A stretch of DNA of 44,850 nucleotides from Pelomyxa schiedti (taxonomy: Eukaryota > Protista > Evosea), in assembly GCA_020536535.1 (NCBI GenBank), contig JAHLWZ010000408.1:1-44850 (forward strand). Direction: 5' to 3'. Positions 2,721 through 31,045 of this stretch are shown in pieces (positions within the stretch are counted from its first letter, which is position 1; every line of letters begins with the position of its first letter). Made by a program: the position numbers and the translations under genes. The notes beneath the pieces are model-generated. The model did no database searches and had not been told where the DNA came from. It was given only the letters and a program-made list of their open reading frames with translations.

Positions 2721-3929
2721 ATGAACATCACAACAGCAAGGTCGCAAGTGATGGCGGTGTGCTGTGCCTCCCTCGGCGCTGTCCATACTCCCATAACTCT
2801 GCCCGCAGCCACAACATCGGCAGTTGGTCGCGCCGCCGCGCCGGCAAGGGCGATGACGGAGTGGGCGCGGTCGCCGGCGTTGGTGAGGCAGTGGGCCGAC
2901 GACTGGGTCCTCCCCCCATTGTGGGACGCCGTGTTGAGGCTCCCGTTCAGGGGCCTAGCCATGGAGACAATGGGCCAGCACCACTTTTTTTGTGTGAGTG
3001 TGTCGATGACACTTGGCGTTGTTGGCCACTCCTGGTGCAAGTGTGATCCCAACGAAACGATGCACGGGTGCGTTGGTGACAACAGGGTGCTGGTGGGCGT
3101 GACAAAGAGGATTCCTGGCAGAGTTGATGTTGAGCTTACTGTGGAGCACATCATCAGGGACACAACAGAGCCGTGGAGCGAAGATAGTTGCTCGCCGGAG
3201 CCCTCTATGGCACAGTGGGCGGCAATCAGGTTCACAACCTGCAACAGAAAGTGGATTGTTGGCTGCAATGACGAGGACTCGGTGCTGTACATTCGCCAGG
3301 TGGTGCGTGGTTCACCTGTTGGGACCGACGTTCTGGTCAAGTGCAGGAACCGCACTCCTGGTTTTGTTCCACAGTTCACACCACTGGGTGATGACAAAGT
3401 GATGTTCTTTGAATCGGATGATAACCGAAATGCTGCCGTGGTGTTTGTTGACTTGAGGGAAAGCTTCAACAAGAAGGAGCTGGTCGTGACATCAAAGATT
3501 GAGTGTGGCTCAAGTTCACAGTTCCCAACGGGAGTCACATGGCTTCCTGATGGTTCTCCTTGCATTTTGCAGCATGACAGGTTGGTGAATGCCAACCTGT
3601 CTATGAACTACAGCCTTGTGGACTCGAAAAGAAATAATATTGCGATACAGAAGCTAACTTGCAAAAAAGTGATCACACTCAGCAAGAATCACCTGTTTGT
3701 GAACAGCAGTCAAGTTTTCTGCACTCGTGACCTGGAACACCCTTCACTTTGCCTAACATGCACTTGGGCATGCCCTGACAAGCCTTCAGGCCTCATTCTT
3801 TCAACATCACACAACACCAACAGGGGAGGCACCGGAATTGAGTTCTCACTACATGATGGTGCCAGTGGATTTCACATTGGTGTGTTCACTGTTGCACTGC
3901 CAACTAATATCAGATTCCAACCCTGGTAA
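2721..3929 (+). CDS. Uncharacterised lineage-expanded intronless family member (ARSQ..ALVRxWAxDWVL / CNRKWIVG / HDGASGF)
   Basis: Long ORF 2634-3929, likely ATG at 2721; motifs shared with the genes at 4017, 7261 and 42580. Confidence 0.8.
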   Translation: MNITTARSQVMAVCCASLGAVHTPITLPAATTSAVGRAAAPARAMTEWARSPALVRQWADDWVLPPLWDAVLRLPFRGLAMETMGQHHFFCVSVSMTLGVVGHSWCKCDPNETMHGCVGDNRVLVGVTKRIPGRVDVELTVEHIIRDTTEPWSEDSCSPEPSMAQWAAIRFTTCNRKWIVGCNDEDSVLYIRQVVRGSPVGTDVLVKCRNRTPGFVPQFTPLGDDKVMFFESDDNRNAAVVFVDLRESFNKKELVVTSKIECGSSSQFPTGVTWLPDGSPCILQHDRLVNANLSMNYSLVDSKRNNIAIQKLTCKKVITLSKNHLFVNSSQVFCTRDLEHPSLCLTCTWACPDKPSGLILSTSHNTNRGGTGIEFSLHDGASGFHIGVFTVALPTNIRFQPW

Positions 3930-4016
3930 TTGGAGAAGAAGGAAACGAAACAAAACAAAGGAAAACACAATACTGTTTTCAAAGGATCCCACAGTGTTGT
4001 GTTGATTGATCGTACG

Positions 4017-5381
4017 TTAAAACACTGAGCCAATGACAAAAGGATCAATGGATGAAAAGGTGAAATCACCAACACAAAATCCTGTGGCTCCATCGTGCAC
4101 TGTGAAGTGAATTTCAGATGTGTTCTTACCACGCTCTGTGCCATCTGAAGTGGATGCAATGAGACCTGATGGGACGTGGGCAGAGGCCCATGTGCATTGA
4201 ACACACAGAGAGGGCGTTTTGAGGTTGTTGGTGGAATAGACATGNNNNNNNNNNNNNNNNNNNNNNNNNNNNNNNNNNNNNNNNNNNNNNNNNNNNNNNN
4301 NNNNNNNNNNNNNNNNNNNNNNNNNNNNNNNNNNNNNNNNNNNNATGTTGGGTGGAAATATATTCGCCTCATTGCCAGTTGTGCTTTCAAGAGCAATCCC
4401 CAATCCAGGACTACCGTGCAAAGTGGATGCGGACCCATCAGGCATCCATAGAATACCCTTTGGGGAAGTATACTGTGAGGTGAAAAACTTTGGTCTGCTC
4501 TTGGAGCCAACGCTTTTGGGCCTATGGTAACTGCACTCAACCCTTGATGTGACAACCAGAGTTTTCCCACTGAAGCTGGATTCCAGGTCAATGAATTCCA
4601 CGAAGCCCCTTTGCTGCGCATTTTCGCTGAATGACAACACAACATCAACACTCACAGGTGAGAACTGTAGAGTCACTATCACGTCATCAACCTGGAAACT
4701 CTGCTCCTCCGAGACCTTCAATCCACAGCCAGATACCTTCCAAACGACCATTTCCAGCGAATTGGCCAGTCCCACAATCCACTTCCTGTTGCACAACACA
4801 TCGAAGTGCGGGTCCCCGCCTGCAGTTGTCAGCGTCCTTTCCTCTGCTCGTCTCGATTCCTGGCCGCTCAGCAGCGGTTGATCCCGAGTCTCGGCCAATC
4901 GACCGCCCGCCACCGCGTAGTCCGCGGCACCCACAATTCCGTGGTAGTAGCTCCAGCCGCTGCAGGGCGACCTGTGGCTCACCAGCACGCCGGCGCCGTC
5001 GTCGCCAACCAGCCCGCGCACCTCGGTCCACGCGTTGTCCATCACGAGCCACCGCGACGACACGAGCCCCAGCGTGGCAGACACACTCACGCACAGGTAG
5101 TGGCACCTCAGCGCGCTGAACGGAAGCCTGAACGCGGCGTGGTGGGCGGGCCTGAGGACCCAGTCATTGGCCCACGCCCGGACAAGGGCCGTCGACTGCG
5201 CCCATCGAACAAGTGATGGTGATGTTGGTGTTGTTGTTGTTGAATGCGATGGTGGTGGTGGCGATGGCCTTTTGGAGACGACGGGGGCACATAGCAGGGC
5301 CGTGGCCTGTGACTTGGCAGTGGTACGAACGATGGGCGGTCGTCGTTTGTGTTGTTTCGGTTGTGACTGGCTGTGTCCCAT
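4017..5381 (-). CDS. CNRKWIVG family member (spans N gap 4245-4344)
   Basis: AKSQATALLCAP, ALVRAWANDWVL, CNRKWIVG, QFSP, FIDLESSF, GILWMPDGS, HDGATGFCVG. Confidence 0.8.
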   Translation of the reverse strand: MGHSQSQPKQHKRRPPIVRTTAKSQATALLCAPVVSKRPSPPPPSHSTTTTPTSPSLVRWAQSTALVRAWANDWVLRPAHHAAFRLPFSALRCHYLCVSVSATLGLVSSRWLVMDNAWTEVRGLVGDDGAGVLVSHRSPCSGWSYYHGIVGAADYAVAGGRLAETRDQPLLSGQESRRAEERTLTTAGGDPHFDVLCNRKWIVGLANSLEMVVWKVSGCGLKVSEEQSFQVDDVIVTLQFSPVSVDVVLSFSENAQQRGFVEFIDLESSFSGKTLVVTSRVECSYHRPKSVGSKSRPKFFTSQYTSPKGILWMPDGSASTLHGSPGLGIALESTTGNEANIFPPNXXXXXXXXXXXXXXXXXXXXXXXXXXXXXXXXXXHVYSTNNLKTPSLCVQCTWASAHVPSGLIASTSDGTERGKNTSEIHFTVHDGATGFCVGDFTFSSIDPFVIGSVF

Positions 5382-5443
5382 GAAACTCTGAGGATCAAAC
5401 CGTTGTGGGAACTTGTCAATGAAAAAGAATTTGATGAGTCGGT

Positions 5444-5564
5444 GTCAGGAGTGTTGTGGAGAGTAATACGTAAAAGTAGCAGAGTTAACAACAAAAGGGT
5501 CCCTCTGAGGATGTCAACGTGAATCACCAACGCAGAAATCAGTGGCTCCATCATGCACTCTGAA
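5444..5564 (-). pseudogene. Orphan 3' fragment of a CNRKWIVG family gene (copy of the end of the 7261-8813 gene)
   Basis: Nucleotide similarity to 7261-7380 (tcaggagtgttgtggagagtaa...ggctccatcatgcactctgaa); encodes FRVHDGATDFCVGD with no upstream ORF. Confidence 0.65.
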
Positions 5565-5865
5565 CTGGCTGACTCAAGACCGGAACGCTATCATTTTCGT
5601 CGCTCAGGATCGGCGGTCTGGTGTTTTTTCCTCGTTGTATTGGTGAATGGCTGTTGTACATATATATATGTACAACCCTGCAAGTCGAAAGTGAGTGGGG
5701 TGTGTTGTAGAACATTATGCACATAATGATTCCTTTTTCGGGAGGTTCAGTAGATTCTGAATGTCTTGTGTGGGAACAAAAAATGGGGCACCCCACAGCA
5801 CATCATAATCAGCAGTAAATTTTGTGTTTTGTCGTTCGTTGTTCTTGGAAGAGACCCGAAAAAAG

Positions 5866-7095
5866 ATGTTGAAGTCACCACCACCGTGCACTGTCGTGGC
5901 CAGTCACCCAACAACGTCGGTGGGCCAGTTCCTTGCTCTTTTGTCGTCGTCCCACCCTCGTTGTGGTGCCCGCAGCCCTGCCCGCATGATCTGCTGCGTC
6001 GGTCCCATAATGTCCGCCATGTGGCGCGACGTCGTACTGCCCACGGCGCTGCTGTTCGAAGTCGTGCTCGAGCGCCCCAGCACGTCGCCGATGTCGTGCT
6101 GCTCTGTTCCCATAACCGTGTCTCCCCTGCTCGGCAGCGTGCTCAACCGTGCCGTCACCCCCGCGGTCACAGGGACCCTCAAGTGGCTCACGCGCCGCTC
6201 CGTCATGCACACCCAGGTCCAGTTCGCCAAGGACTCCTCAGCTGTCACCGCGTCGATTCGCGACGGTCTTCTAATCATTTGGTTCCAAACGGGCGGCCGC
6301 GGCCTCTGCGAGTGCGCCAATTCGAAGTGGCTGATTGCGTGCGAGAGCCTCCCTGGGGACGCAGGACGCGTGCTGGCCATCAGGAGCCTCCCAACAAACC
6401 CGGCGGCGATTCGCAATTGTGGGAGCCACCAAGCCGCTGCAGCTGTTGTTGTCGACCCCGCTGTGGTGCTTGTTCCCGAGAGCGACGCTGTGTCCAGCTT
6501 CTCGCCTGTTCTATTTTTCAACAAGGTTGTTCCTGACGAGGCACTGATGTGCACTGCCAACTTTGACCAGGCTGTGTTCACTCTGTTTGATGTGGAGCTC
6601 ACATTTCAGTCAAAGAAGCTGGCTGTGGTGGCTTGTGCGCGGGCGGACTGGACGTTGGATGATCCGTGCATGTATGACACGGCTCTGGTGATGAGGAGAG
6701 CGAGTGGTGGTGTCGTCTTCGTGACGAAACCTGTTGGGGATGACAACTTTGTGAGGGCAGTGGACGGCAGGACGGGAAATGCCAGGCGTCTGGGAGATAG
6801 GGGCGCTGTTATCATGCAGGTGGATTCCTCTGTGTTCTGCATCTGCACCAACGGAAAGTCATCGTATGAGCTGTGGGACTGCAACAACCTGGAGCAACCA
6901 CTGAGGACCGTGGAAACCGGACTTGTGGCACTTGGCCAGGTTGTTGGTGGAAGGGGCTTTCTGTTCTCTGTGATTGATGGTGGTAAGATTGTGGTGATAA
7001 ATGCGGTGTCAGGCGTTGCTGTCACCTCTCTTGCTGTTTCCTTCACCCCCCACTCTCCGTTCTTCATCAACCAGCTTTACTCTCTTTTGGACTGA
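5866..7095 (+). CDS. Related expanded-family member (HPRCGARSP / CANSKWL subtype)
   Basis: Intronless ORF; QFLALLSSSHPRCGARSPA N-terminal motif, CANSKWLI, FDVELTFQSKKL, YELWDCN. Confidence 0.75.
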   Translation: MLKSPPPCTVVASHPTTSVGQFLALLSSSHPRCGARSPARMICCVGPIMSAMWRDVVLPTALLFEVVLERPSTSPMSCCSVPITVSPLLGSVLNRAVTPAVTGTLKWLTRRSVMHTQVQFAKDSSAVTASIRDGLLIIWFQTGGRGLCECANSKWLIACESLPGDAGRVLAIRSLPTNPAAIRNCGSHQAAAAVVVDPAVVLVPESDAVSSFSPVLFFNKVVPDEALMCTANFDQAVFTLFDVELTFQSKKLAVVACARADWTLDDPCMYDTALVMRRASGGVVFVTKPVGDDNFVRAVDGRTGNARRLGDRGAVIMQVDSSVFCICTNGKSSYELWDCNNLEQPLRTVETGLVALGQVVGGRGFLFSVIDGGKIVVINAVSGVAVTSLAVSFTPHSPFFINQLYSLLD

Positions 7096-19019: not shown

Positions 19020-19125
19020 CAATTGGATCGTTCTGCGTCTAGTAAACGTTGGAGACACACCGGGGAATTAAAAAATTAAAAAAGTATTTTTTTTTTTACA
19101 TTTTTTATTGTGTTAGTGGAGGAGG

Positions 19126-22100
19126 CTAGACCTTGCTTATGTTGGTATTGGTATAGTCGTTATCCTCCTCGGCTGGTACAGCAGGGGTGTCAATCACAAA
19201 GAGGGTGTGCCCCAGTGCATTCATCAGGGTCCATGAGGACAGGGCACCGGCGGCCACGACGCTGATGACTAGCGTGATGCACAGCCATATTTGGGCTGAT
19301 ACCTCGTCCACGTGCTCGATTGTGATTCCATCGGCTGCGCTTACTGATGAGGAAGCCGATGCGGATATTGCGGAATCATTGGCTTGCATTACATAGAGAG
19401 CCCAGTCACCTTTTTTGGGTGTTCCGGTTAGGCGTTATTTGGGATCGGGATTGTTATTTGTCTGTGGTTTGTTTTATGTTTCTTTTGCGTTTGCGCGCGA
19501 GGGATTTACTTCGGTTCTTTTCTGTTTTTTTTTTGTGGTTTGTGTGGAGAGAAAGAAAACCGGCGGCAATTGCAACAGTCTGAACGGAAAACACAAGTGT
19601 CCACCAATTGGGCGTGAACGGTGCCTACGTGTGGTTAACGGAGCGAAAGGAAAGGTAGTTCTTACTCTTATCCAGAGGAGGGTCAGTCTTCCCAGAAGCA
19701 GAAGCATGAAGAACGAGAAAAATACACAAAATTTGAAGAAGGCCTCAGGACCTTCAATCGAGTTATATGCAACACCACCAAGAGCGGCAGGAGCCATCAA
19801 CAAGAAAATGACAGGGATCAGTGCTCGTGACCCTAACCTTGATTGAAGAAGGTTCACCTGCAAAGAGATTTTAAAAACTAGAGAAGCAGATTTGGAATCA
19901 TACAAAGAAAATAGTACTCAAAACTAGCCAGAAAAATACTCCAGCAGAATAAAATAACCATGTTATATGCAGAATATCCACACTACCTCCAGCATAAGCT
20001 AACATAAAATTTCCAACTAGAAGAAGGTGTTAATAACGTTATTAATCTGGAAATTTAATTATTTAATCTTTAACGGGATTTACCAACAGGGAGAAAGCAG
20101 GTTGGGCTACAGTCTGTTAGTTTGGTTCGCGGTGCGGTGAACCATCTCCCAACAAGGAAAATCGTCAGAGGGAGATGAACGGCGGCTGATATGGTCTAAT
20201 GAGAAGTAAGTACTTCCAGGAACAGGAGTGTCCCGTCATTACCCAAAGAACGATGGCGAGATTCCGTAGGTCCGCATTGGAAGAAGCAACTGACAATAAG
20301 AGAAGTGTTATGCCAGGAGTAGTGTAGTAGTTTCCTTTCATATGATGGAAAAGTTCTCCCCAAACAATTCTGGGAAAAAGTTAAATCATTTGATCAAGTC
20401 CAAAGAATTGCACTACCTGGGAAATAGAAACACACGCAGTGCGAACGTTATCAAAGTTATTAGCAGCACAACAGCTGATGCAATGGCTATGGCATGCGCT
20501 ATTGCTGCTGGGATATTAGACCACACTTCATGCATCTTGAACCAGACAATAGACAAAGCCGCAAATGACATTGGTATACAAAACAGACTTGCAAAGAAGT
20601 AGCGAAGCCATCCTCCCAGAGGTACGTTCATGGGCTGAATCGGCTGGAAGCCAAAACCGGTACCTTTTGAGTATTTTGGAGGCTTGTATCCAGACGGTTT
20701 CAGGGCCCACTGCTCCGATTCCACTTGCTCCTATGCTGAGTCAAGAATAGATTTGTAGTAGAAAGGAAAATACTTTGGTGTCGGTTGTTGCTTCCTCCTG
20801 TTTTGTGGTGGGTTCATTCACTGGGGTTTTTTCAGGAGTTCCACTTATGCGTTTTACGTAGGCAGCAAACTTCTCCCTGCTTGGAGTTCTGCTTATTTCT
20901 CTGCGGCGTCCATCATAATCCCAACTTGCGCTTCTCCAGCTTCTACTTCTGCTCCTTCCATCCCAAGTCCTACTATAAAAGCTAGCCCCATATCTGCTGT
21001 CCCAACTACCTCCATATCTACTCCCCCAGGGGCTAGCCCCATATCTACTGTCCCAACTTACAAAGCTGCCCCGCCTCTGGGGGCTGATACTTTGGAAGCT
21101 CCTCCCGCGACTTCTATCTCTCCAAGATCTACTTCCACTTCCACTTCCACTAACCCAGCTCCTGCTTGGGCTCTTGCTCATAGGGCTTCTACTTCTACTC
21201 CCAAGACTCCTGCTTCTGAAACTCCTGCTTCTGACACTCCTACTCTGGACGCTTCTCCCTCTGCTTCCGCTTCTCCAACTCCTTAAACTTGGGCTTCTGC
21301 TTACATTACTTCTGCTTCGACCTCGACTTCGACTTCGAAAGCCAATGCTTCCACTCCCGCCTTTTTTCTGCTGAAATCTTTGTAGGAATCTTGAGTCAGT
21401 ACTAGTACTTCTTCCCCTGCTTCTACTCCTGCTCATTTTTATGTTCCTGCGCCCACTCTTACTTCTACTCCTACTCCTACTCCTACTACTCCTGCTCCTG
21501 CTCCTACTGGCACTTCTGCTAATATTTCCTCTGCCCCTCCTGAGTTTCGTTTTCAGTTTCGAATTGCTGCCTGCATGAACAACCACAGAGGATGTTGAAG
21601 AGTCTCTATCATTGGCCCCAGCAGAAGCAGTTGCGGTAGCGGCCAGAGGAGTAGGTGCCGGAGGAGCATTTCTCTTGGGAAGTGGTAGTGGAATTCCCAC
21701 AGGTGTTGGCGGTGGCATTTGTTGCCTGGGGGGTACCCGCGGAGCCGGTAGTGGTGGTAAATCCAGACCAATAAGGGTAGGTGGTGCCATTTGTTGCCTA
21801 GGAGGTATTGGGGGAGCGGGGGTTGAAGGAGGCCTTACAACTCCAGGTGAGGGTGCTTTAGGGGAAGCAGCGGGGCTGTTTCTGGCAATGGATGGTACTT
21901 TAGGGGAGGCAGCAGGAGAGTTTCTAGGAAAGGAAGGAGCCTTGCCTTGTAGTGCAATTTTCTGCAGTGACGGGGATCGTGACCTAGAACTGGATGGAGA
22001 ATTTCGGGAACGCCGGCCGGCAACGGGGGATCGAGAACGAGACATTGAGCGTGAGTATCTGGACCGGGAGCGGGAATTCGACCCAGATTTGGAACGTGAG

Positions 22101-22963
22101 GTGGACCTGGGTTGTGGTCTTTCTCTGCCATTGGGAAACCGCCTAACTGGAGGGCCGGAAAATGACCTTGACCTGGATGATTTTGATCTGGATACAGAGC
22201 GGGAGAATCGTCGTTCCGATGGTGACCTTGAGTTGCGAGGAGATGGAGAGAATCGTCTAGGTGAGCCTCGTGAAGACCGGGTTCTTGATCGGGAACGAGA
22301 AAATGGTGACCCTGAACCAGAGTGTGGTAAGTTCCTTGCAGGGGAATTTCGTCTCTGTAGGAACTGTTACTCCTTGTTTTGGTGTATTGTATTGTATTAT
22401 TAAATTTATTATTATTAATAACTAGCAGTATATATGCGTTAGATATAAGAATATATACCCTGATGGGCGACCGAGAGAAAGAACGCTGGGATTGTGATCT
22501 GGACCTCGATATCGATCTAGACCTTGAATTTCGAGGTCTCTGCTTACCAGAGAAAGAACCAGATGAATATCCACGAGAAGCCGGTGACCGAGAAGTGTAG
22601 ACAGGCCGTGCTAATGAATTTGATCGCGAATATGATCGGGAACGAGACTGAGAGCGTGATTGTGACCCCCTCGGGCGCGGGGGGTGTGAGGCTCTAGAAA
22701 TAGGCCTGGATCTGGAACCTGAGCCCGATGTCGAACCTGAGCCTGAGAAAGAGCGCGACGGTGGTGATCGAGAGAGTGACCTCGAACTGGAACGAGGTCT
22801 ATGTGGTTGTGTGGCTACAAATTTAACTGGTGGTTGCTTTTTCTGCAAGCAACATATAATTAACGAAAGTAAGCGAAATAAGGTGCGAGGGAACCCATAG
22901 AAAAAAAGGGAGGAAAAAAGGAAAAAAACGGTTGAGGTTTTTTTTAAAAAAAAAACGCACCAT
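19126..22963 (-). CDS. SLAC1/TehA (TDT family) anion channel with very long Arg/Ser-rich N-terminal extension
   Basis: Exons: ATG 22961-22963, 22459-22842, 20774-22354, 20417-20730, then several short TM exons down to 19126. Motifs LRYFFASLFCIPMSFAALSIVW, GELFHHMKGNYY, GRWF..DCSPTCFLPVVGNF, LIPVIFLLMAPAALGGVAY, FTPNWWTLVFSV and TLMNALGHTLF parallel SLAC1 (EYFHPVRVNF, NPSSHLSVVGNF, LHPV...IAAPS, WWSYTFP, TLLHAFVWQTLF). Confidence 0.85.
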
Positions 22964-29497: not shown

Positions 29498-31045
29498 ATG
29501 GCGAACCGCACGGACCCGTCGGCCAAGACAATCAAGGGAACAAACCCCCAGAATTTGATTGAGAAAATCCTCAGGCTTAGAATATACTCCAACAGTTACT
29601 GGAAAGAACATTGCTTTGGGTTGACTGGTGAAGTCCCCCCTCCTACTGTTGTTGTTTGGGTTTTTTTTTTTTTTTCGCCCCTTATCCCAACAAAAAAATG
29701 ATTGTACACTTTCGTTGTGAAGTAACGCGGAATAATAGCATCAACAATTGTTGACAAGGCTATGGAACTCACGGAAATTGGTGGCACCTATGGAGGGACA
29801 AAGAAGCCAACCAAATTCATGTGCCTGGTTTTGAAACTGCTTCAGATTCAGCCCGAGAAGGAAATTATTGTCGAATTCATAAAGAATGAGGACTACCGGT
29901 AGTCACCCAACTTTTAGTTTTTATACACCAAACAAATCAACAGGTATGTGAGACTTCTTGGTGCTTTTTACATGCGGCTTGTTGGGAAACCTGTTGATGT
30001 TTATCAGTACCTAGAACCCCTTTACAACGACTATAGGACTATACGCTACAAATTAGACCATGGTATCCCAGAACCATATAAAAATGATCACCAAGTTAAA
30101 TAAGGCCACAAGAAAAGCCACGTCGATGAATTTGTTCAATCACTCCTTACACAAGACTATTCCTGTGACATCGTTCTCCCAAGGCTTCCAAAGAGGTTCC
30201 CTCACCTTTTCTTTCCTTCTGAGCTGACTCCTTGGTAGGTGTATGTTGGAAAGTGTGGGCTTGCTCGAGAGGCGAATAAGCGCTCTGGAAGATGACCTTG
30301 AGGATCCTGACCAACCCCAAGTTCGTCCCAATCAAACTAAACAGTCCCATTAACCGAGTTAGGTTGAAATACCAGCACCTACATCAACTACTAAACCAGT
30401 AGAGCCCACATCAGAAAAACCAAAAGAGACCCATGCTGGAGACACCAGGGAGAAAAGTCGAGGTTCTGACAAAACAACAGATAGAGAGACCAGAGATGGA
30501 GACAGAGCAAGGGGGGAAAGGCACCACGAACATGAAGGGGAACGAGAGAGAGGACATGAAAGAGAAAAGGATAAAGGAAGAGATAGAGACCGAGATAGGG
30601 AAAGGGAAAGGGACAGAGATCGAGAAAGGGATAGGGATAGGGATAGGGAAAGGGACCGGGACAGGGGAAGAGATAGAGAAAGGGACAGAGAAAGAGATCA
30701 TAGTCATGACAGAACCTCAGAGCGGGATAGAGACCGGCAGCGGCAGAGAGAAAGTAGCAGAGAAAGGGACCACCGGCACAGAGAAAGCAGCAGAGAGCGG
30801 CACAGCGGAAGGGGAGAGGGCCGAGAACGAGAACGAGAACGGGAACGAGGCAAAAGAAAGGACAGTAGCCGGGAAAGAATCAAAGAAAGCAGAGGCAGTT
30901 CCACAACGAAATCCACAGACGGCAGCAGTCACCCCGGCATTACCAAAGCTGAAGAAGAACCCGTACCAAGGTACTTTCCCTATTCTGCCCAAACGGTGTT
31001 CTCATGTGGCACAGGAAAAGGGAACACAGCCGAGACAAAGATTAA
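29498..31045 (+). CDS. PRP38: Pre-mRNA splicing factor PRP38 (PRP38A type) with RE/RD-rich tail, multi-exon
   Basis: MANRTDP..TIKGTNPQNLIEKILRLRIYSNSYWKEHCFGLT, GGTYGG.KKPTKFMCLVLKLLQIQPEKEIIVEFIKNEDY, YVRLLGAFYMRL, YLEPLYNDYR. Confidence 0.95.

Follow-up and report, generated by a model that had tools for sequence, protein, structure and literature searches.

A predicted SLAC1/TehA-type anion channel with a long arginine-serine-rich N-terminal tail in Pelomyxa schiedti

Can a channel domain of the SLAC1/TehA (TDT) family and several hundred residues of arginine-serine (RS) repeats, which as a rule belong to splicing factors, be parts of one protein, and what might such a tail do at the mouth of a pore? 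The question is raised by a gene of Pelomyxa schiedti, an anaerobic amoeba, on the minus strand at 22963-19126 of a contig of 44,850 nucleotides (GenBank assembly GCA_020536535.1, contig JAHLWZ010000408.1, positions 1 to 44,850). This whole stretch is referred to here as the window, and coordinates are given in its numbering unless another locus is named. The gene comprises ten exons and encodes 1057 amino acids. A first-pass annotation, made from the letters alone, had proposed that it encodes a SLAC1/TehA-type channel fused to an "SR-protein-like" N-terminal tail of about 650 residues. The fused tail-channel protein is, in our judgement, very probably real. The fuller statement, that one gene yields one 1057-residue membrane protein whose charge-switchable tail regulates the pore, is put forward tentatively and falls a little short of an even chance.

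The gene model is already public. Consecutive translations of the exons reproduce, without a mismatch, a 1057-residue protein, GenBank KAH3763146.1 (referred to below as P0001), and the model is identical to that of the first-pass annotation. The gene models of P. schiedti come from Augustus predictions, with refinement by PASA and EVM against Smart-seq2 transcriptomes of single cells (PMC8887013). In GenBank, KAH3763146.1 is labelled "C4-dicarboxylate ABC transporter [Pelomyxa schiedti]"; this label is a misnomer, because SLAC1 is the sole Pfam family found on the protein, which is also the sole member of its cluster. Full-length analyses were performed on P0001, and the spliced gene model was searched exon by exon. 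With the 104-residue junction exon, aligned with its paralogous counterpart described below, as the query, a single match was obtained among 1.84 billion representative proteins, namely P0001 at residues 656-761.

The ATG-only first exon, the exons of 384 and 1581 nt and the canonical phase 0 intron of 43 nt that had been proposed for the 5' half are all present on the minus strand, to which every feature of the gene given below belongs. Exon 1 (22961-22963) consists of the ATG start codon alone, followed by GTGCGT, and provides residue 1 of P0001. Intron 1 (22843-22960; 118 nt, GT..AG, T-rich, with the 3' end TTGCAG) separates it from exon 2 (22459-22842; 384 nt), which encodes residues 2-129 as RS block 1a, with 34% serine, 20% arginine and serine codons that are nearly all TCN. 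Intron 2 (22355-22458; 104 nt, GT..AG, AT-rich) is followed by exon 3 (20774-22354; 1581 nt), in which residues 130-656 form RS block 1b, a Pro/Ala-rich block, the motif TSSVVVH, RS block 2, the motif KFAAY and a linker. The fusion junction is intron 3 (20731-20773; 43 nt, GTATTT..CATAG, phase 0), the length of which fits the size range of the RNA-confirmed introns (41-151 nt); its retention leads to a frame stop at the TGA of 20743-20741. Exon 1 and these three introns were recognized in the sequence and lie outside the RNA contigs discussed below. Exon 4 (20417-20730; residues 657-761) begins with a conserved pre-membrane segment, SEQWALKPSGYKPPKYSKGTGFGFQP, and continues into the first two transmembrane helices (TM1 and TM2); an RNA contig covers 20417-20676 of it. 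The tail exon junctions are all in phase 0. Plus-strand frames through the tail, rich in DR and ER and at most 263 residues long, were rejected as antisense shadows of the RS frame.

That tail and channel share one coding frame is supported by a second intact copy of the gene on contig C87, located at about 3778-6957 on the plus strand of locus L006 (G000:C87:17000-26500), whose channel exons are 71-77% identical to those of the window. No protein for this paralogue was found in the public collections searched. It consists of an ATG-only exon (ATG followed by GTATGA), an intron of 95 nt, an exon starting with KKQ, just like exon 2 of the window, an RS block, a Pro-rich block, TSSVVVH, another RS block, KFAAY, a short intron and the TDT domain. 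The short intron is a 44-nt GT..AG interval, the counterpart of the 43-nt intron 3, and restores the channel frame; at the site of intron 2 the paralogue is without an intron and its open frame runs through. A run of N interrupts the paralogue at L006 4525-4625, with duplicated flanks of about 120 nt, and once these are collapsed the frame is continuous and the tail amounts to about 449 residues, as against 656 in the window. A third TDT match, at C87:31439-31555, was rejected as a third gene, since it is a near-identical partial copy past an assembly gap. In the adjoining locus L007 (G000:C87:26501-36000, about 4900-5460 and downstream), a near-identical partial copy of the last exons of the paralogue, together with the following gene, comes right after another N gap and probably reflects a duplication in the assembly or between haplotypes and not a third gene.

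The comparison of the two copies bears directly on the fusion junction. Over the 29 codons from the acceptor to M690, 21 nucleotides differ between the copies, 17 of them at third positions, and 15 codons differ by synonymous changes only versus four with amino acid changes. This pattern of purifying selection indicates that the stretch from the acceptor to M690 is translated in the channel frame. M690 (20629-20631) is the sole in-frame ATG from the junction to TM1 and a possible start of a channel-only product, but the paralogue has Leu at this position and no in-frame ATG before TM1. Since, moreover, the acceptor's own TAG closes the channel frame on its upstream side, this frame has to be entered from an exon further upstream. 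The adjoining upstream sequence is the tail frame, which is open for 656 codons here and for about 449 in the paralogue, and it joins the channel in frame in both. The tail islands TSSVVVH and KFAAY are kept between the paralogues through synonymous-only changes, and the residues that follow the putative donor are unconserved and pyrimidine-rich in their coding (VFSFLLQIYS vs VCVLSYFFSS). The proposed fusion has thus gained a public gene model, a paralogue of the same layout and purifying selection ahead of TM1; it is not shown by RNA.

The identity of the C-terminal part was examined with profiles and structures. The TDT domain that had been read from the letters was recovered by the profile search, in which residues 701-964 of P0001 matched Pfam SLAC1 (PF03595) at positions 2-297 of 331 with 104.4 bits against a cut-off of 27.9 and an E-value of 9e-30, and the objection that no such match would be obtained thereby falls away. 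The NCBIfam TehA and tdt models matched at E-values of 6e-24 and 2e-21, below their equivalog/subfamily cut-offs. Exon by exon, only two weak colinear SLAC1 matches were found (E-values 0.0029 and 0.048), the former with exon 8 on its own, and PF03595 searched against the genome in six frames matched nothing, the exons being too short for it. The best sequence matches in the PDB were Arabidopsis SLAH3 (6.6e-16), SLAH1 and SLAC1, followed by Haemophilus TehA (1e-4), and plant SLAH clusters were nearest to P0001 in a language-model atlas. An AlphaFold2 model of residues 690-1057, built on an alignment of five sequences, was of moderate confidence (mean pLDDT 62, pTM 0.67), with TM10 and the C-terminus in the low-confidence range. 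In a structure search with this model, 24 TehA/SLAC1/SLAH chains (E-values 2e-7 to 3e-5) came ahead of any other fold, with TM-scores of 0.60-0.66 by query and 0.64-0.79 by target (0.66/0.79 for TehA 3m7c). The C-terminal 400 residues are best explained as a domain of the TDT/SLAC1 family with ten helices in five hairpins, as in TehA and SLAC1, and as a putative anion channel or transporter.

Beyond exon 4, this domain is spread over six exons. Exon 5 (20243-20369) lies between introns of 47 nt each (20370-20416 and 20196-20242), which were confirmed by RNA contigs of the runs X1 and X2. Exon 6 (20084-20195), from which the motif CFLPVVGN crosses the next junction, is followed by exon 7 (19904-20016), whose flanking introns of 67 and 46 nt were confirmed by RNA, and by exon 8 (19666-19857). 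Exon 9 (19561-19624) encodes TM9 with WWTLVFS, in which the codon of F954 occupies 19591-19589. The last intron (19410-19560; 151 nt, GT..AG) is skipped by the X1 RNA contig and is the same in the GenBank model. Exon 10 (19126-19409) encodes a Ser/Ala-rich loop insertion of about 27 residues between TM9 and TM10, then GITIEHVDEV, TM10 and an acidic C-terminus, and ends with the TAG stop at 19128-19126. The decapeptide GITIEHVDEV is identical in both paralogues and is absent from the bacterial and plant relatives.

The pore-occluding phenylalanine of TM9 is F450 in AtSLAC1 and F262 in TehA. In the Pelomyxa protein, the counterpart of the Phe in SLAH3 WWAYTFP is F954, which does not vary across an alignment with four bacterial relatives, in agreement with the earlier reading that the gating Phe is kept and that the Pro after it is replaced by Ser. 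The latter position is Ser955 here and Ala in the paralogue, versus Pro in SLAH3, SLAH1 and the bacterial-type proteins P0002-P0005; the missing Pro is a departure within the TDT/SLAC1 family and no ground for exclusion from it. The two termini of TehA and SLAC1 lie in the cytosol, and by analogy both ends of the Pelomyxa channel domain should face the cytosol.

Relatives of normal length were found. A word-indexed search of proteins of 220-700 residues returned four TDT proteins (P0002-P0005) of 327-345 residues with 27-30% identity. The corresponding search of proteins of 581-1850 residues gave no long-tailed relative besides P0001 itself, and the language-model atlas showed no large cluster of long RS-plus-TDT proteins; these searches were of limited sensitivity with poor coverage of protists, and absence elsewhere is provisional. 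In the literature, nothing on such a fusion was found with SLAC1 combined with "RS domain" or with "Amoebozoa". Bacterial TehA/TDT proteins (H. influenzae TehA, PDB 3m71, and the metagenomic P0002-P0005) share the fold, whereas they have only 15-40 residues before TM1, are without a tail and keep the Phe-Pro pair. One of the nearest normal-length relatives is bacterial (L028, GCA_943370215.1, 4001-4984; 27% identity), with a TehB-like methyltransferase gene and a TauE gene nearby.

The tail comprises residues 1-656 of P0001 and contains 151 R+K against 19 D+E, which gives a net charge of +132 and an isoelectric point of 12. The RS dipeptides, SP sites and Pro-rich block noted earlier were all recovered: serine makes up 26% (173 Ser), arginine 19% and proline 11% of the tail, with 137 RS/SR dipeptides, 22 SP sites and a block of 26-30% Pro. 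Its hydropathy (Kyte-Doolittle, windows of 19 residues) never exceeds 0.56, and no hydrophobic segment is present. No match to the tail was found in Pfam, NCBIfam or, with residues 1-700 as the query, the PDB. The tail is presumably disordered and cytosolic and would hang at the cytosolic mouth of the channel, because a charge of +132 cannot cross the membrane and the termini of TehA/SLAC1 are cytosolic.

In the nomenclature of Manley and Krainer, an RS domain comprises at least 50 residues with more than 40% R+S and consecutive RS/SR dipeptides, and a strict SR protein has an RNA recognition motif (RRM) plus an RS domain. Both blocks of the tail agree with the former definition: block 1 (residues 1-270) has 33% S and 23% R with 70 RS/SR dipeptides, and block 2 (residues 401-620) has 31% S and 25% R with 66. 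No RRM was found, and no Pfam family besides SLAC1 was detected on the whole of P0001 and none on the tail exons. On its sequence, then, the protein bears an RS domain and, because it is without an RRM, falls outside the strict SR proteins; "SR-protein-like" does not hold in the strict sense. SR splicing factors and SR-related proteins resemble it in having RS blocks of over 50 residues, above 40% in R+S, with runs of RS/SR dipeptides. They differ in that the Pelomyxa protein is without an RRM or other RNA-binding domain and its RS blocks are placed on a membrane domain.

The serine codons of the two blocks form nearly disjoint sets. Within 20774-22842, block 1 uses TCN 86 times and AGY twice, and block 2 uses TCN four times and AGY 69 times; the paralogue is split alike, with 66/4 and 8/45 (L006:3876-5440, plus strand). 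TCN and AGY codons are not interconvertible by single synonymous steps, which suggests that the two RS blocks had separate origins, both older than the gene duplication, and came to share one amino acid composition by convergence. At the DNA level, the tail contains few and short tandem arrays and no fresh microsatellite. The disjoint codon sets argue for selection on protein composition and not for drift of one DNA repeat.

Several known systems provide a frame for what such a tail might do. The N-terminal extension of plant SLAC1/SLAH3 is the target of activating kinases, and its phosphorylation activates the channel. The plant proteins (PDB 7wnq, 8gw6 and 9m7r) share with the Pelomyxa protein PF03595, the pore Phe of TM9 and a cytosolic extension before TM1. 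They differ from it in that the channels are only 22-24% identical, the Pelomyxa tail is about three times longer (from chain lengths and match positions), consists of RS repeats and is unrelated in sequence, the pore Phe is followed by Ser (Ala in the paralogue) instead of Pro, and the insertion of about 27 residues separates TM9 from TM10. No homology to the N-terminal regulatory region or phosphosites of the plant proteins was found, the PDB matches starting at the membrane domain (query positions 55-67 of P0001:640-1057), and the likeness of the tail to the SLAC1 N-terminus is positional only. In plant SLAC/SLAH channels, the N- and C-termini together form a plug under the pore at the cytosolic mouth (PMC12808693). 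SLAH1 is without long termini; its pore is closed by tRNA bound to the positively charged cytosolic face and is opened by RNase or by K/R-to-Ala mutations (PMC12808693). The AtSLAH1-tRNA complex (PDB 9m7u and 9m7w) is alike in being an S-type channel, and it indicates that polyanion-polycation contacts at the mouth can gate the family. It is unlike the Pelomyxa protein in that its positive charge lies on the channel body, whereas in Pelomyxa the charge lies on the 656-residue tail, where RNA binding is only conjectural.

From these comparisons the following mechanism is proposed as the most likely role of the tail. The tail would present two arginine-serine blocks around a proline-rich block, followed by the short conserved pre-membrane segment leading into TM1, and would sit at the cytosolic pore mouth as a charge-switchable regulatory domain. 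In its unphosphorylated state it would act as a polycation, able to block the mouth or to associate with acidic lipids or RNA; phosphorylation at many serines by SRPK/CLK-type or other kinases would neutralize it, with altered gating, partners or location as the result. SRPK-type kinases act on RS domains, including that of a membrane protein, the lamin B receptor (PMC4841541, PMC5617974). Because of the plug formed by the plant termini and the tRNA plug of SLAH1 (PMC12808693), the suggestion that the channel is gated by massive phosphorylation of its RS tail, or through binding of RNA or condensates, gains some plausibility. Regulation of the pore by the tail through such a charge switch, argued from analogy, is possible but rates somewhat below evens. 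A more specific version would make the RS tail a cis-tethered, phosphorylation-switchable polycation that gates the pore directly or via RNA recruited to the mouth, an amoebal and independently arisen counterpart of both the SLAH1 tRNA plug and the phospho-released terminal plug of SLAC1/SLAH3, which would tie anion efflux to the activity of SRPK/CLK-type kinases or to the free RNA of the cell; this version is speculative and improbable as it stands.

The explanation that competes most seriously with the charge switch accepts the fusion and denies the tail a role in gating: the tail would be a tolerated low-complexity expansion typical of the genome, or would serve sorting or retention (at the inner nuclear membrane, as in the lamin B receptor), or scaffolding through its Pro block. 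In the lamin B receptor, the RS stretch is short and stands beside a Tudor domain. This receptor is polytopic in the membrane, and the RS domain within its hydrophilic N-terminal part is phosphorylated by SRPK1 and can serve tethering and localisation (PMC4841541, PMC5617974). Its membrane part is, however, a sterol reductase and not a channel, and there is no homology to the Pelomyxa protein. The lack of any Pfam, NCBIfam or PDB match for the tail is compatible with this explanation, and two further observations weigh in its favour and against a pore-regulating tail. One is that the two tails align in islands only and that one is longer than the other by about 200 residues, as loose constraint would have it; this comparison was a scripted global alignment, BLASTP of the first tail halves having aligned nothing owing to composition filtering. 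The other is that 160 kb sampled arbitrarily from 20 contigs contained one further RS-dense locus, L011 (G000:C4:1-2854, plus strand), whose open frame is split into segments of 254 and 331 codons with up to 32 RS/SR per 60 residues, so that the RS tail may be a habit of the lineage rather than a device specific to the channel. Set against this are the more than 440 codons held open in both paralogues with the order of blocks kept, the scarcity and shortness of DNA tandem repeats, and the RS composition reached in both paralogues with two disjoint serine codon sets, which argues for selection. A tail without a gating role is on balance unlikely.

Genome-wide searches for similar tails gave little. 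A degenerate (RS)6 DNA pattern had 517+603 matches across the whole genome versus 1478+1400 for the reversed control, simple repeats being dominant and the pattern uninformative. A search of the genome with the protein sequence of tail block 2 retrieved that block alone. Elsewhere in the window, a minus-strand frame of 74 codons (30707-30928) contains 13 RS/SR dipeptides in a leucine-rich context and is probably an off-frame reading of a repeat.

A second alternative concerns the transcript. The main product could be the channel alone, from a transcript that begins at about 20680-20730 or skips the tail exons, with the start at the ATG of 20631 or in the ATG-only exon, and the RS frame would then be separate (ending at the TGA at 20741) or a rare cassette. 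M690 lies 11 residues before TM1 and gives a complete TDT protein of 368 residues, and skipping of the tail exons, which are in phase 0 at both ends, preserves the frame. The RNA evidence came from three single-cell runs of one study (X1, X2 and X3; 53-98 million letters each), viewed as contigs. A spliced X1 contig of 1166 nt and depth 16.7 spans 19112-20676 and confirms the six introns of the channel half (47, 47, 67, 46, 41 and 151 nt), three of which are also confirmed by an X2 contig. The junctions of the channel half are thereby established, and the three of the tail, including 20774/20730, are unconfirmed by RNA. Several points weigh against the fused transcript here. The X1 contig stops 54 nt before the acceptor at 20730 and 45 nt upstream of the in-frame ATG of M690 (20631-20629), inside the zone for which the first-pass annotation had named a separate channel start as refuting the fusion, and this is how a separate channel transcript would look; none of the three runs has contigs on 20781-22963, the 2.2 kb of the tail; and the GenBank model may be ab initio at the fusion junction. 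However, in none of the three runs does coverage extend beyond the 1.2-1.6 kb next to the 3' end, as 3' bias would predict, and the absence of tail RNA is weak evidence, coming from small, probably 3'-biased Smart-seq2 runs seen as contigs only. The fusion junction is neither confirmed nor refuted by RNA. The 45 nt that the X1 contig reaches beyond the ATG of M690 run into the conserved coding segment, and no polyadenylation-like signal was seen by eye between the tail and channel parts, nor an AATAAA after the tail-frame stop in either copy. Given also the Leu at the M690 position in the paralogue, with no other in-frame ATG before TM1, the purifying selection on the 29 codons upstream of M690 and the unconserved, pyrimidine-rich stretch after the donor, a channel-only main product is a distinctly unlikely account of the locus.

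Two side observations were made on the RNA contigs. An X3 contig of depth 2, at 19548-19698, is unspliced across the intron 19625-19665 and extends into the intron 19410-19560; its source is either pre-mRNA or DNA that entered the RNA library. Three single-base differences from the genome were seen in the X1 contig (19258 G>T, 19714 C>A and 19970 C>T on the plus strand), which could be allelic, cell-to-cell variation or error.

The fused protein, with a tail tentatively read as a charge-switchable regulator, is of interest for the channel family. If the tail is neutral low-complexity sequence, the finding shrinks to a correctly predicted, misnamed gene. To our knowledge, S-type anion channels have been studied almost only in plants, where the central question is how the pore is controlled at its cytosolic mouth, both by phosphorylated termini of the channel itself and by tRNA, the latter reported in late 2025. 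A eukaryotic member as distant as this, carrying some 170 potential phosphoserines and a net charge of +132 tethered at the mouth, would be a natural extreme case. The only RS domain on a membrane protein that we know of is that of the lamin B receptor, and the Pelomyxa tail would be a rare RS domain outside RNA processing. The Pelomyxa channel could be used to test whether charge switching or polyanion binding gates this fold generally.

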